From the NCBI RefSeq assembly GCF_021869535.1, contig NW_026262712.1, positions 89,466,001-89,530,000 of the forward strand: a DNA stretch of 64,000 nt, in the 5' to 3' direction. Every line of letters begins with the position of its first letter. Within the stretch, counting starts at the first letter, position 1. Positions 3,318 to 62,792 of the stretch are shown piece by piece. The position numbers and the translations under genes are program-made. The notes beneath the pieces are model-generated. The model saw only the letters and a list, made by a program, of their open reading frames with translations, searched no databases and was not told the DNA's origin. This stretch comes from Mytilus californianus (taxonomy: Eukaryota).

Positions 3318-4340
3318 AAACTAGATAACTGACATGTCAGCATGGTCCCCTTACACACTTAAGTTGTTTGAGGAACAGAAACAATAATTAGTACTGGTGC
3401 AAAATTACAAGTTCTAGTGACATCAATTTTCGTAGACACTATGACATAGTTCAGAATGTATTCTTCATGAATATAAATTTTCGTTAAAATCCATGTTTTA
3501 AGTATTTTGGTGACCATTTTGAACATGGGAGCCGACCGATAATTTTGACACCGAAAATCTACTTGAAATAGCATATCATTCATTTACAATTTTCGATGAT
3601 ATCCTACCAAACAAATGTGTAACTTACTATACGGTATGGGTTATGCTCAATGTTGAGACCGTACTGTGGCATTCCTTTTTATTATGAAACAGAATTTTTT
3701 CTCCAACTTTGTGATTTTTAAATTAAGGGTGAGTTTTTTTCCCAAAATTTGACACAAAAAATCAACTTTGAATAGCATTTTATACCGGTATAGTAATATT
3801 CGTTGAAATCCTAGCAAAAAGATGTTTCTCAAAATTAAAAAAAAATGAAAATTTTAACTAAGTTTTTACCACAATTTTCTTTAAAATTTCTTACGCCAGT
3901 AATCAAACTGGAATATCATACAAAATCCTACATATATCATTTTTCTTTGAAATACCATCACAAAAACTATGCTTAAGCACAAATCCCACATCCACTCCAC
4001 AATTTGAACATACTGCTTTGACACCGGGAATCGACTTAGAAAGCTAATTATACCTATACATATCAATTTTCGTCGAAATCCTAGTAAAAAAGATGTTTCA
4101 AAATTTGTGGTTTTTGTTTTACAAAAACTAATTTTTTTACAACAAAATTTGTCAAAATTTAACAAAAATCTAAAAGAGACTTTCCATGAGAAGATACATT
4201 TTGTACTAACACTGTGCATACATATTAAGCAAATTAGTTGAGATCATTTTGAACTAATGTACAACCTAAAAGTGATAACGGACAAACAGACTCGCAGACA
4301 GGCAGGTAGGCAAGGTGGTAGTTATAGGGGACCTTAAACA
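3318..4340 (-). mobile_element. Non-autonomous Helitron/Helentron-type element (HINE-like) with decayed internal tandem repeats
   Basis: Left end AAACTAG, palindrome CTGACATGTCAG (3329-3340) and GGTCCCC. Right end has a GACA/GGCA microsatellite (~4280-4315) and GGGGACC (4327-4333). Internal TGACAC...AATTTTCG..GAAATCCTA units occur 3 times. A family A fragment is nested at ~3625-3670. Confidence 0.6.
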
Positions 4341-47334: not shown

Positions 47335-50083
47335 CCATGACTGAATTAAAGTACCTATGCCTTTTTTTTTTGCCTGGATGAAATAGTTTCGTTTATTCGA
47401 TTATGATAAAACTTCTTTTTTTTTCTGTTATATTTTAGAATACGGAGAAGTTTAAACGCAGTCTCTTCAAATCAACAACAAAGAACAGCTCTCTATACTC
47501 ATCCCAAACGTCTCCATCATTAGGGCAGAACGGTTTGGTGAGAGAAACAATGGATTCATATCCACAGACTTATATTTTGCAATTCAGTGCACAAAAATCT
47601 ATTCTTATAATACCAATGATGGAACTGCTTTGATGTCAGTAGTTGAGTTGTAAAATAACACACGATTCTCCGGTACACCGAAATGAAACCGATTGATTCG
47701 AGCCATTTGTTACTTTCACGACTTATTACTGCATTTATAGAGAGAGTCGTTGTAATTGCTACTATAATACTACTTTCAAATTCGTGCATTTTCCAGTACA
47801 TGTTCTATGTCTCAATACTTATGTTATTACGTTACAGTAAGAACCGATGGCTCAACGGCGGCATTTACACCAAATGACCTCGGGTCAACTGGTGTAACCC
47901 ATTTATAAAAAAAAAAAAAACTCGACATTGGTCTATTTTCTATGAAGATCATTAGTTTGTGTAACAATACTCCTCTAGGTGTTAAGTGATGTTAGGTTTT
48001 ATATGTGTAGTTATATTCAATGGTCATGCGCAATGACGTGCGAGAATAAAGGAACTGTCATAGGTAAACATATTCCTTTGATGCAAAAGGTCAAATGTAA
48101 AAGAGAGGCGAAAGATACCAAAGAGACATTCCAACTTATAAGTCGAAAACTAACTGATAACGCCATGACAAAAAAAAACCCAACCCGAACAACAGTATAG
48201 AAAAACACAATATAGAAATTGAAGACTGAGCAACACGACTAAAACCGAAAGCAAGAGCAACACTAACCCCTTTTAAGCAAAACTAGGGATGATTTCTGGT
48301 GCTTAAATTCTCACAAAGACACAAAGAGTTGTTGGAAAAGTTTTGATCTTCATAGAACGTGACGTTCTCCTACATTGTAGTTTTGAACATCGCGTGATAC
48401 ACCCAATTCTAGTCGCACGTGACTTCGTATTTTTCAATAACATCCACTAGGATGCCCCCTCAACTTCGGTCTTACCGTCGGACGGGAGAAGCGAGAGAAG
48501 TCTAAATGACCATCATTATTGGAGCACTCTTGTCAAAAATGGGGTTTCTAATGCAATAGGTTTTCAGTATACATATCTTATGAAAATATTTTAATAGTAG
48601 TAAAATAAATATGTATTATATATTAATTATAGTTACTTGTTTGCTTGGTATATTATAATTGTTTTAAACCGGTATCAAACATATTGTATTACTTTTCAAA
48701 TTAACAGTAATACAGTTTTCTCGAAGGCTATATTTTAAGAAAATATTGTTGCTAAGATGTTATTAAAGTTTTTGAAAATTGAACTTCTCGTTTGGTTGAT
48801 ATTCACTTGAATTGTATTTTGACGTTCTGATATAAGCTCTGCTTTGTTTTGAAAACCCATACATTAAAATTGGAAAATAATGTGGAGTTGTCAATTTTTA
48901 TATACAAATATATATCAAATAAAAGGGGTATTGTCAGCCATCGGAGTAGATAGAACCATCAGTGTCGTTATTTTGTTTTTAGACCAAAGCTTTGAATAAA
49001 AAATTTACCTTTTCTTTTACATTTAACAATCTCATCTACATAACCTTGTGTCTTTTTATGAATTTTATTCTTATGATGTTTTGTGATATTACGTAAATCC
49101 GTCAGTCGATGTTAGATGATACTATTTTTTTAGAATGGTATTATTTCAGTCATGAGATAATATCAGATGGGTAATACAATTTTTTCTGATACTGCATGGC
49201 ATCAATATTGCACTTTTAATACTGTATGTCATAGGTTACAAGCATTGGCGTCATAATTATAAGCCAACCGTCTTGACGTATTACCTAGGGTATACACCAT
49301 TCATGTGCCGTAATAAATAATGCTTTGCTAAATTCCAAATACTTGCAAAGCAAACATCACTGCAAAATTCCCATGAAATACAAAGTACGTGTTTTAAGTT
49401 TTTCAAATTATAATAGAAATTCATGGCGCTGATATAGTATGATTTTGTCCATATACATTTTTTTGTGCTGAATGTTAAGTGGCAAATTAATAACTATTTA
49501 TTGATTGAAGTATAACAAGTTAGTATTAAATGATTATTGTATAATTGATACACAACTAGGATAATATCCTCCAGGCGTGTAATTGCCATGCGAAAAATCT
49601 TGTTAAAATTCCTCACTATTTGTATTTTCACAGTCATTAGCTGAACCAATTTGTTCTCCGAACATTTTAACACGTCCATCTGACATTATTATGTATGTAG
49701 CATTTGTCAACGTGTGTTCTTTAGTGTCAGTAGCATAATTTACATCTTACAAATTGAAACAAACATTGTAAAACATGCATGATGGGAACGGACTATATAA
49801 TAAAAACATGAAAACAAACATCATTTCCGTTCTTAAATCTGTTTTGTATGGGACTCGAACACATACTTTCTATCTCGGGAAGACGGATGCAGCATATAAA
49901 AAAAGTTTTTATTGTGTTTAAAAGTTAACAATGAAGTATGCTTCGTTTATGGCCATTCCAACCAATATGGTTAAAAGACTGTTTCATACCAAAACAGTAC
50001 GTAATCTGAATATACATGCATATAAATTCACATTTTCAGATTTAAATAATTTTTTGACGATATTTACATTTTATTTTGATTAG

Positions 50084-50233
50084 GAAACGATAATGGAAAA
50101 AGAGAGTCTGTCTTCAACAACACATTACACTCGGAAGAAATCGTTCCCTTTTCAACACGAACATGGATTACATGCAGGGATGTATAGTGCTCATGGCTCT
50201 AGAAGACCATCAGTGGCTTACAGGGCCGTTAAA
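50084..50233 (+). CDS. HVCN1-like: Hv exon: N-terminus (ETI)MEKESLSSTTHYTRKKSFPFQHEHGLHAGMYSAHGSRRPSVAYRAVK
   Basis: ttttattttgattag acceptor, ATG at 50093 in strong context, AAA|GTAAGT donor, phase 0 into the next exon. No direct homology support. Confidence 0.75.
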
Positions 50234-53628: not shown

Positions 53629-53747
53629 GCTGTGGAAAATGTCGCTAGACGAATGTCCACACCTGATTTCTCAATTGAAAGAATTGAGCAAAACTTAGAG
53701 GAAGAACTTGAGAGAGAATCAAAAGAACCAGAAAAACTTGGAGACAT
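53629..53747 (+). CDS. HVCN1-like: Hv exon: AVENVARRMSTPDFSIERIEQNLEEELERESKEPEKLGD(I)
   Basis: tttacag acceptor, AT|GTAAGA donor, purine-rich coding composition. Phase 2 matches the S1 exon. Confidence 0.85.
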
Positions 53748-55418: not shown

Positions 55419-55543
55419 TTTACGAAGGTCTGGTGAGAAACTCCTACATAGTAAAAAAGTTCTGTTTTTGATCGTGCTTTTAAACATCATCGATTGTGGA
55501 TTGGTTCTTGGTGAATTAATTTTAGATATACACTTTATAAAAG
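55419..55543 (+). CDS. HVCN1-like: Hv exon, S0-S1: LRRSGEKLLHSKKVLFLIVLLNIIDCGLVLGELILDIHFIK(D)
   Basis: D112, V116, E119 and D123 equivalents are conserved. cttttcttgttacag acceptor, non-canonical AAG|GCAAGT donor. Confidence 0.92.
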
Positions 55544-57041
55544 GCAAGTATTAGATAATGTAACATCTAACATACCTTATAAATCTGAAAACTGAATAAC
55601 GTTGGATATAAAAGGATTGCCTTCAAATTTTCAAAAATAACTAGTTCAGGGTATTAATTCTTCGACACATGTCATGTATTAAACATGTATTCATTGTAAC
55701 ATATAAATATGGAGAACACCAATTCAAATGTGTTTCTTAGATATGAAACAGTTTACTGAAGGTTACGAGAATTTCGGGGTAAACATAAATCTTATTTTAT
55801 CAATAAAATGTAGTATTACTGATGTAACGTAAACCACAATTCAATTAGAAGGAAGGCCATGCATTGTCTTTAATTAAGAATTAATTCGTTTATGTTATTG
55901 ATATTGTATTGAAAGTGTCTTTAGTATCAAAGTTTAGCAATCAATCAAAAGCGTTTTGATTTTATGCATATTTGTACAATTGTTGGATATTGTTAGGAAT
56001 ATAGAATCTTCAATATCCAATTCCACCAAGTTTCGTTAACTTTTGGTTTTTAACCCCATAGTGAAACAATTTATGTGCAATTGCTCACAACTCTTTTTTG
56101 TGTGTGTATTTTTTGCATAAGGTAATGTCCAATTGAATGTACAGTTGAATTACTACTTAAAACTCATTATATACCTGCATGGAATGTATACATTCCTTGC
56201 GCCGTAGACTGATAGGTAAAACTTGTTCTGTAATAAAGTTCAAGACATTTGCAAGCAATTGTAAGCAAACTAAATATTTTCGAAAATATATTAAGGTAAA
56301 GATCAACGTTCTAAAAGTGCAGTTATTAAATATCACCAGGGGGTTAAGGAAATAATTTGAAATGTTGATAATATTTCACAGATAATTTGCAATGCAGCAA
56401 TAGAATTATAATATATCATGATTATTCGTTAGATGATTATATTCGCAGTACAGTGTCGGAATTATTAGATTAATTTGTTATATATGAAATTGTCCGACGT
56501 TTTGTATGGAGGGTATCGTGGAAGAGTGTTCTGCAGAGAAGGCATCTTTGAAAAAATATTACCAAAAATATTTTTCGTGGTATTTATGTTTAGTACCAAT
56601 TTCACGAAAGAGATAAACGATCCGTTCACAATCATTACTAAAACAATTTTTCATGGCACCTAGTATAGTGAATAGTACCATTTTCACTATGAAACCCGAT
56701 TCATTCCTTATCTATTTTGCTCTCTATGTATTTAATCAGAGAAAGGTCATTATATTTACAAGACCTTGACCACAGTAAGCACGATGTGAAGAACAAATTA
56801 TCGAACGTATCACTGAAAATTGGCTAAATTGCTTTATTAATATATATTATTGGTAAATATGGACGGATGGTTGTCTAAAGATTGATGATTATACCTTCCT
56901 TAATCAATGTGATTGATTATACCCTCTTTAGGAAGATTATCTTTCATTGACGTTTCTAAGTCTAATCATCATCTTCTTTATTTTACGACTAAGTATGCTC
57001 AGGTGCTACAACAGTTATATGTATATTTACAAAAACATTTG

Positions 57042-59125: not shown

Positions 59126-59433
59126 ATATGGTAAACGACTCAAAAGTTTTAATCAAAAAGTTCATGGTTATCTTACGGACCGAGTTTGCTGCAATATTTG
59201 GATTAATAGACACATTAGATGTACCTGCATATTTCAACACAGTCATAAATACAATTTCACATCCTTCAAAATATAATCGGACGTTATCAAACAAATCTAG
59301 TGATCATTTTCAACAATTTACACATCAAGATATGCCAACTTTTTTGGATACAACAGTTACAACAATAGAAGAAGATATAGCTCATGCATTTCATAAAGCT
59401 AGTATAGCAATATTAGGTTTCCTTGTTTTAATG
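59126..59433 (+). CDS. HVCN1-like: Hv exon: long S1-S2 loop and S2 (...EEDIAHAFHKASIAILGFLVLM)
   Basis: tttcag acceptor in phase 1, ATG|GTAAGC donor. FHxxSIxIL matches Hv1 FHYMSITIL. Confidence 0.92.
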
Positions 59434-61510: not shown

Positions 61511-61564
61511 ACTATTTTAAAAGTATTTTGTTACGGAAAAGAAATATTCAAGAAAAAACTTCAG
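61511..61564 (+). CDS. HVCN1-like: Hv exon, S2 end and S2-S3 linker: TILKVFCYGKEIFKKKLQ
   Basis: Long polypyrimidine tract ending tttttacag, CAG|GTAAAC donor. K157, E164 and K169 equivalents are in register. Confidence 0.92.
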
Positions 61565-61999: not shown

Positions 62000-62450
62000 C
62001 AGTATAAGCTATTGCTAGCAATTCGGGACCATCGTCTGTCCGCCGTCATCGCCAATCATTTGTTTACTTTTACAAATATCTTCTTCTCTGAAACTACAAG
62101 GCCAAATAAAAACAATAGGGCATAGGGGCCAAATATTTTATCATTTATTATCTTGTTAACCATTCTAGATAGAGACAATATGACAAGGGAAGAAATGTTC
62201 AGAATGACGAGATCTACGCACCAGTCATATTGACCAAAACTGTCAGACGACTCCTCATACGAGTGATTGTCCTTAAATAATTTATTTTAACCATTTTTGT
62301 TTTTGCCCTTTTATCTTGAAATCTATAAAAGATATAGAGAAACTCTAAAAGAAAAATTATCTGCAAGACCATTTCTATAAATAAGCTAAATGACAGAATA
62401 TCGTCAGCGACTCAACATCGATAAAGTACTGTTGCCTAAATTATATAAAC
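62000..62450 (+). mobile_element. Truncated sibling of the 57042 HINE
   Basis: CATCGTCTGTCCGCCGTC...TTTACAAA.ATC.TC.(T/C)CTCTGAAACTAC.AGGC and TTTTATCTTGAAA.CTATAA units are shared with 57100-57960. Confidence 0.75.
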
Positions 62451-62653: not shown

Positions 62654-62792
62654 CTATTTGATGGTGTAATTGTGATTATATCCTTCGTCCTAGATCTTGC
62701 CTTTATAAAAGGTATGATGGAATATCCACTAGAAGATGCAGTTGAAATCCTAGCATTCCTTATACCATGGAGAGTAATAAGAGTTGCCAACA
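62654..62792 (+). CDS. HVCN1-like: Hv exon, S3-S4: LFDGVIVIISFVLDLAFIKGMMEYPLEDAVEILAFLIPWRVIRVAN(S)
   Basis: D174, S181, F182, D185, W207, R208, R211 and N214 equivalents. tcatttcag acceptor, A|GTAAGT donor. Confidence 0.95.

Follow-up and report, generated by a model that had tools for sequence, protein, structure and literature searches.

A transcribed and selectively constrained Hv3-family gene of the California mussel, with a proline-bearing S4 and a candidate proton path of shallow voltage dependence

Our analysis of a 64,000-nt stretch of Mytilus californianus DNA (the window, by which we mean the whole stretch) identified a gene that is almost certainly a member of the Hv3 family of voltage-sensor proteins. 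The gene comprises 8–9 exons with an intact coding sequence for 409–464 aa, and it is live, transcribed and selectively constrained. It is an ordinary member of an already published mollusc family. By analogy with the Aplysia protein AcHv3, we propose, with a probability of roughly 0.5 to 0.6, that its product would conduct protons selectively, respond only shallowly to voltage and be open with high probability at resting potentials, so that inward current would be possible.

The S4 segment is encoded at the end of a short exon on the forward strand, and human Hv1 numbering, checked on the 5OQK alignment, is used for its residues:

62654..62792, + strand: S3-S4 exon, 139 nt, with the S4 motif at its 3′ end; D174 and D185 kept
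62762..62782, + strand: S4 signature IPWRVIR; Ile at R1 (R205), Pro at L206, followed by W207, R2 (R208) and R3 (R211)

Translation of window positions 62762-62791 on the + strand gives IPWRVIRVAN, and nothing like it is found on the translated minus strand of the same positions. The exon (LFDGVIVIISFVLDLAFIKGMMEYPLEDAVEILAFLIPWRVIRVAN) is flanked by tttcag/ at 62654 and by /gtaagt from 62793 and ends one base into the codon following Asn, with the ten codons of the motif in frame at its 3′ end. A phmmer comparison of the exon with all PDB chains returned two matches at E<1, both of them Hv1, namely 3WKV (mouse Hv1 chimera) and 5OQK (human Hv1). The segment ilaflIPWRvirvaN of the mussel exon pairs with ...LLILLRLWRVARIIN of Hv1, and in both chains the mussel ...AFLIPWRVIRVAN stands opposite ...LLRLWRVARIIN; the alignment places Ile at R205 and Pro at L206, and W207, R208, R211 and N214 are retained. 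The preliminary description of this DNA had read the motif in the same way, with Ile as the R205-equivalent, Pro as the L206-equivalent and two arginines left, and this reading is borne out by both the translation and the alignment to Hv1. IPWRVIRVAN is not a chance match, since the exon is spliced in transcripts, is 100% identical in the Mytilus coruscus orthologue and is echoed in seven paralogous stretches.

The gene model combines ORF inspection with tblastn matches of the public protein closest to it, CAC5376356.1 (P0018), the ‘HVCN1’ of M. coruscus, which is 96–100% identical exon by exon. Besides the S3-S4 exon it contains the following elements:

47445..47537, + strand: possible 5′ exon; tblastn of P0018, 93.5% identity over 31 aa
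50084..50233, + strand: upstream coding exon; tblastn of P0018; in-frame ATG at 50093 (MEKESLSS...)
53629..53747, + strand: N-terminal cytoplasmic exon; alternative start ATG at 53653, which gives the 409-aa product
55419..55543, + strand: S1 exon (LRRSGEKLLHSKKVLFLIVLLNIIDCGLVLGELILDIHFIK); D112-equivalent Asp, Asn at V109, E119 and D123; GC donor
59126..59433, + strand: long extracellular S1-S2 loop and first half of S2 (...EEDIAHAFHKASIAILGFLVLM); tblastn; Leu at the F150 and Met at the E153 position
61511..61564, + strand: second half of S2 and S2-S3 turn (TILKVFCYGKEIFKKKLQ); K157 kept, Gln at the E171 position
64422-64537, 66393-66474 and 67090-67400 (stop), + strand, in coordinates extended past the window end: three further exons; tblastn and spliced contigs (1422-1537, 3393-3474 and 4090-4400 in L004 coordinates)

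Joined from the ATG at 53653, the exons yield a 409-aa ORF without interruption. Judging from the sequence, the ATG at 50093 is likely to be the start of a 464-aa product; its exon has the splice sites ttag/ and /gtaagt and matches M. coruscus DNA at 97% identity, most of the differences being synonymous. The possible 5′ exon is the counterpart of the exon with which the M. coruscus model begins its coding sequence. However, M. californianus has ACG where that model starts with ATG (window 47442-47444; the genome has ...aatACGGAGAAG just before 47445) and the next in-frame ATG lies at 50093, so that either the two species probably have different N-termini or the first exon of the model is untranslated. 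A short isoform stopping right after S4, with the 66393 exon in the wrong phase, was rejected, as exon 64422-64537 was found and the joints were confirmed.

The intron after the S1 exon is of the GC-AG type, with the donor AAAAG/gcaagt at window 55544-55545. The GC donor is also present in M. coruscus (L028 11300-11301), and all seven paralogues have GT at this position. The public model CAC5376356.1 takes a GT within S1 instead and thereby drops 11 helix residues (GELILDIHFIK). We take the GC-AG version as the putatively correct one because the paralogues splice at this site, because M. coruscus carries the GC too and because scallop and pearl-oyster homologues have the full S1. The GT donor inside S1 was rejected on these homologues and paralogues and on the 33 nt skipped by the M. 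coruscus model, which are intact in M. coruscus DNA; the splice within S1 in CAC5376356.1 is probably a misannotation.

Evidence for expression comes from four runs placed on 6 kb spanning exons 4-8, three of them as Logan contigs and one as raw RNA (X21). Three runs, belonging to two studies of the same organism, yielded contigs with the GT..AG joints between exons 4 and 5, 5 and 6, 6 and 7, and 7 and 8, exactly at the modelled boundaries (115/1205, 1343/2973, 3088/4944 and 5025/5641 in L017 coordinates), and the RNA origin of the contigs follows from their being spliced. The S3-S4 exon occurs with 0 mismatches in spliced contigs of runs X15, X16 and X18, and its splice to the preceding exon 61511..61564 is seen in those of X16 and X18. 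In the large raw RNA run X21, 0 reads fell on exons with about 6% of the run sampled; expression of the gene may be low or tissue-restricted. Two intronic stretches, at about 62067-62097 and about 64600-64780 (L017 618-648 and 3150-3330), combine very high RNA and contig depth with numerous mismatches and with ends that are loose on either side, and look like copies of abundant transcribed repeats rather than of the Hv3 gene.

Comparison with the M. coruscus orthologue (locus L028) gave a dN/dS of 0.11 over 467 aligned codons; 18 differences are synonymous, and the 8 that are non-synonymous all lie outside the transmembrane segments. These data bear on the reading of the gene as a decaying duplicate whose odd S4 arose by drift. 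Such a pseudogene would be in keeping with the large number of paralogues, in tandem or segmental copies, on a single chromosome, with the ACG in place of the M. coruscus start codon and with the non-canonical GC donor after S1. Nevertheless, the ORF is intact over all exons, the contigs are correctly spliced, dN/dS is low, the motif is preserved across the family, from Solemya to Mytilus, and the GC donor lies in a strong AAG/gcaagt consensus that is shared with M. coruscus. We therefore regard the pseudogene reading as effectively refuted and, for practical purposes, excluded.

To place the gene among its relatives, a profile made from the eight mussel S3-S4 exons of this type was searched against 1.84 billion representative proteins, which gave 271 matches at E≤1e-3 and 148 at E≤1e-10; against Hv1 structures the profile reached 1e-41 and 3e-36. 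Among the 150 matches listed, the S4 reads LPWR in 105, VPWR in 21, IPWR in 8, MPWR in 7, LPWG in 4 and FPWR in 2, and [LVIM]PWRxxR is found in nearly all representatives of the family. One of the matches (P0096) is XP_005094274.1 of Aplysia californica, a protein of 980 aa with LPWRVIR starting at 429, in agreement with the published AcHv3 (980 aa, L429, P430; PMC10911540). A 2023 review defines ‘unconventional’ Hv proteins as those that combine xPWRxxR with a very large loop between S1 and S2 and with large intracellular parts (PMC10377628). The preliminary description had named xPWRxxR as the mark of molluscan Hv3 with a leaky member in Aplysia, correctly according to PMC10377628 and PMC10911540, and had supposed a bivalve host, as is indeed the case.

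A maximum-likelihood tree (IQ-TREE, LG+C20; 90 rows × 261 columns) was calculated with 74 full-length sequences of the xPWRxxR type. Its other 16 rows are conventional Hv1, drawn from molluscs, a brachiopod, nemerteans, an insect, a priapulid and vertebrates; it does not include the reference sequences of AcHv2 and CgHv4. The xPWRxxR proteins are split from conventional Hv1 at 100/100. A position outside the Hv3 clade had been named in advance as an outcome that would speak against the assignment; the gene lies inside the AcHv3 clade, the smallest clade that holds both of them comprising 49 rows at 100/99. Within this clade, the mussel gene forms an orthogroup with sequences of M. coruscus, Ylistrum balloti, Pinctada imbricata and Crassostrea gigas (100/99), which is enlarged by Mactra and Solemya at 97/99. 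Pfam scans of the single exons gave no match, which was not counted against the family assignment because the exons are short and the family is divergent. On full proteins, Pfam Ion_trans stayed below threshold for the orthologues P0018 and P0026 and was reached for AcHv3 and Mytilus Hv1.

Two matches from outside the molluscs concern the age of the S4 proline, which is said to be missing in Annelida and Nemertea (PMC10377628). The nemertean Tubulanus polymorphus (P0129, XP_074660947.1) and the annelid Owenia fusiformis (P0098, CAH1785627.1) both have LPWRVIR, at 397 and 341, respectively. Because of these proline-bearing motifs, the S4 proline may be older than the common ancestor of molluscs, brachiopods and phoronids.

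The modelled protein consists of S1-S4 followed by a hydrophilic tail and thus represents a pore-less voltage-sensor domain without S5-S6. In PMC10911540, Hv channels are recognised by S1-S4 without a pore domain, an acidic filter residue in S1, an S4 tryptophan with two or more basic residues near it, and a proton-selective, Zn2+-sensitive conductance; the first three of these features are present in the modelled protein. It retains D112, E119, D123, K157, D174, S181, D185, W207, R208, R211 and N214; the selectivity aspartate is the Asp of NIIDCGL, aligned to D112 (Asp in 63 and Glu in 4 of the 74 family rows), and the S4 tryptophan is accompanied by the basic residues R208 and R211. Across the 74 rows, the R205 position is hydrophobic throughout (Leu 53, Val 13, Ile 6, Met 2), the L206 position is Pro in 73, the F150 position is always Leu, Met, Ile or Val (Leu in the mussel gene), and the V109 position is mostly Asn, as it is here. 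Since these four changes are family-wide, the S4 motif and the gasket changes are best read from the alignment as synapomorphies of the whole family and not as peculiarities of the mussel gene. Likewise, Ile at R1, found in 6 of the 74 full-length representatives, is a conservative minority variant in this alignment and not a special feature.

The inner acidic residues vary more within the family. E153 is present in 55 of the 74 rows, including AcHv3, and is lost throughout the seven-row orthogroup of the mussel gene, where Met, Leu, Ile, Phe or Val takes its place (Met in the gene itself). The E171 position is Gln in Mytilus, as in 11 of the 74 rows, so that D174 is the single inner acid left among the three examined (E153, E171 and D174), and the outer acidic cluster of E119, D123 and D185 is intact. 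Outside the transmembrane core, 104 residues separate D123 from F150, about 75 more than in the 16 conventional Hv1 (24-34) and near the short end of the family range (97-596, median 146). A further 169 residues follow N214, and the total of 409–464 aa compares with 271 aa for Mytilus Hv1. Both the loop and the intracellular domains are therefore enlarged as in the Hv3 family, although the intracellular part is far smaller than that of AcHv3. The combination of RxWRxxK and small size that marks Hv4 was not found in the window gene (IPWRVIR, 409–464 aa).

For a structural view we used an AlphaFold2 model (m4b5f30f82bcf, mean pLDDT 83.8) of residues 83-344 of the scallop orthologue P0026, which also carries IPWRVIR. 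The model has four long helices, and its S4 is a DSSP-continuous helix from 12 residues ahead of the proline into the C-terminal tail. A break of S4 at the proline is thus not predicted, and DSSP continuity would be compatible with a moderate kink. A Foldseek search of the model against the PDB gave no match at E≤0.001; the best-ranked chains were voltage-sensor domains (Ci-VSP, human Hv1 and NavAb) at weak E values of 0.2-6, probably due to the long helical extensions of the model. In the region that matches window exon 59126-59433, the ends of the S1-S2 loop are confident helices that prolong S1 (H17-66) and S2 (H135-182), with an additional helix at 76-96 and disorder limited to 97-134. The model suggests that the loop may form a structured extracellular stalk, whereas the loop of AcHv3 has been described as being without obvious organisation (PMC10911540).

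The Hv3 family has been little explored, and AcHv3 is the only member ever recorded. In this protein, the first S4 arginine is absent, a proline adjoins the tryptophan, and a proton-selective leak with weak voltage dependence was observed (Chaves et al., FEBS J 2023, PMC10911540), with a slope of about 60 mV per e-fold (PMC10911540, PMC10377628). Our search of the literature found no electrophysiology or other functional study of any bivalve Hv3. AcHv3, a gastropod protein, is accordingly the sole basis of the analogy, and the mussel charge combination differs from it in that AcHv3 keeps E153 and E171.

In the mechanism that we propose, protons would pass through the protein's own voltage-sensor domain, which would be biased to the conducting state. 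One gating charge would be lost, leaving two S4 charges, and Leu at F150 together with Asn at V109 would weaken the hydrophobic gasket. In Hv1 the open state is stabilised by outer acids and the closed state by inner acids (PMC4969798). With the inner counter-charges replaced (E153 by Met, E171 by Gln) and the inner cluster down to D174, the closed state would be less stabilised, while the outer acids that favour the open state remain. Shallow gating and a conducting bias would be expected because the missing gating charge, the weak gasket and the replaced E153 and E171 act in the same protein in which the outer acids stay. H+ would then follow its gradient either way, inward included. The preliminary description had proposed much the same by analogy, with reduced gating charge, a kinked S4 and constitutive or inward conduction.

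Work on Hv1 supplies arguments in both directions. Neutralisation of R205 in human and Ciona Hv1 lowered the gating charge in most studies and by itself caused no leak (PMC4969798), and replacing R1 alone by Ala or Leu in Hv1 did not produce a leak either (PMC10911540, discussion). It is therefore worth considering that the mussel protein is a functional Hv3 channel which is clearly voltage-gated with a shifted threshold and not constitutively open, the leak of AcHv3 being specific to that protein or to the expression system. Consistent with this, R2, R3, D174, K157, D112 and W207 are kept, and of these R2 and R3 together with D174 and K157 would be enough to gate the channel; human Hv1 R205A still gates, with 0.63x the gating charge (PMC4969798) and without leak (PMC10911540); the AlphaFold2 model has S4 as an unbroken helix; and the authors of the AcHv3 study themselves lean towards shallow voltage dependence rather than a genuine leak in the closed state (PMC10911540). 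We nevertheless consider clear voltage gating unlikely, as E153 is Met in the mussel and neutral E153 mutants shift the threshold by -55 to more than -100 mV (PMC4969798), and as F150 and V109 are Leu and Asn, and gasket mutants of lower hydrophobicity are reported to leak protons through closed channels (Banh et al. 2019, as cited in PMC10911540).

The protein might also conduct no protons across the plasma membrane at all and serve instead as an organellar channel, or as a sensor or regulatory subunit that pairs with Hv paralogues via its coiled-coil-like tail. The large loop and tails, which are unlike those of conventional Hv1, the room that eight paralogues leave for subfunctionalisation and the loss of two inner counter-charges would fit such a role, yet the selectivity aspartate and its partner R2 are under purifying selection, and AcHv3, equally suspected, turned out to be selective for protons at the plasma membrane (PMC10377628). 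This possibility appears improbable, and a proton-selective path with shallow voltage dependence remains our preferred reading. The loss of E153 throughout the orthogroup raises the tentative and rather doubtful idea that this group of Mytilus, Ylistrum, Pinctada, Crassostrea, Mactra and Solemya sequences is an Hv3 subtype of its own, present across bivalves, which would act as an essentially voltage-independent and permanently open proton shunt or as a non-channel sensor. A description of an E153-less bivalve Hv3 subtype was not found in the literature searched. If true, an open proton shunt could serve, for example, in shell or epithelial acid-base transport.

The mussel genome contains a whole set of Hv3-type genes. 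In M. californianus, eight S3-S4 exons of equal length carry xPW[R/G]xxR, and all of them lie on contig C132, i.e. on one chromosome:

C132 at 58.09, 58.21, 66.08, 87.52, 87.55, 89.53 (window gene), 90.48 and 104.27 Mb: eight Hv3-type S3-S4 exons (loci L007-L014)

Besides the window gene, the motif is thus borne by seven homologous stretches of 141 nt, corresponding to the 139-nt exon and the first two intron bases. The location of all eight on one chromosome, with two close pairs among them, indicates that the Hv3 set grew by local duplication. Their number agrees with the statement that bivalve species have up to eight unconventional Hv members (‘manuscript in preparation’; PMC10377628). Elsewhere the genome has one exon of the conventional kind (RLWRVTR, C154) and one that is Hv4-like (RLWRFFK, C99, L016). 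The paralogue at L009 1501-1641 (C132:66083201-66083341) reads LPWGVIR, with Gly at R2 (R208), and this variant is kept in M. trossulus, M. edulis and M. galloprovincialis (P0002 cluster; proteins P0002, P0028, P0050 and P0140). The conventional mussel Hv1 (RLWRVTR; L015 1132-1632, C154:33397675-33398175) is 98% identical to M. edulis ‘HV1’ and has everything from the N-terminus to S4 in one exon, whereas the Hv3 paralogues spread this region over four or five.

Overall, our results leave the known picture of Hv channels unchanged. They add a validated gene model with a conserved GC-AG intron that was missed by the public M. coruscus model, RNA and selection evidence of a live gene, a count of eight paralogues on one mussel chromosome and a sub-clade that also lacks E153. 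This sub-clade represents a natural experiment on the charges and counter-charges needed by an Hv voltage sensor. Moreover, Hv3 genes are candidate acid-base transporters in calcifying animals that are sensitive to ocean acidification.

Compared with known Hv proteins, the window protein is most like AcHv3. Both have a hydrophobic R1, a proline before the S4 tryptophan, R2, R3 and N214, the selectivity aspartate in S1, Leu at F150, a residue other than Val at V109 (Asn in the window protein, Thr in AcHv3), an enlarged S1-S2 loop and a long C-terminus. However, AcHv3 has 980 aa, a 299-residue loop, a D123-to-F150 span of 312 and a 535-residue C-terminus, against 409–464 aa, a span of 104 and a 169-residue tail in the window protein, and only the transmembrane core is common to them; at R1, E153 and E171, AcHv3 has Leu and the two kept glutamates where the window protein has Ile, Met and Gln. 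Of the two, AcHv3 is the one with a functional characterisation. CgHv4 (Chaves et al., FEBS J 2023, 290:3436, as cited in PMC10377628) is likewise a bivalve Hv paralogue; as described there, Hv4 is small with short loops, keeps R1 and has Lys at R3 (RxWRxxK), and the window gene has neither of these two S4 features. Conventional Hv1, both human HVCN1 and Mytilus Hv1 (P0174/L015), shares with the window protein the four-helix voltage-sensor domain without a pore domain and the residues D112, E119, D123, K157, D174, D185, W207, R208, R211 and N214, but differs from it in RLWRxxR, F150, V109, E153, E171 and a span of 24-34 residues, and is separated from it by the 100/100 branch.
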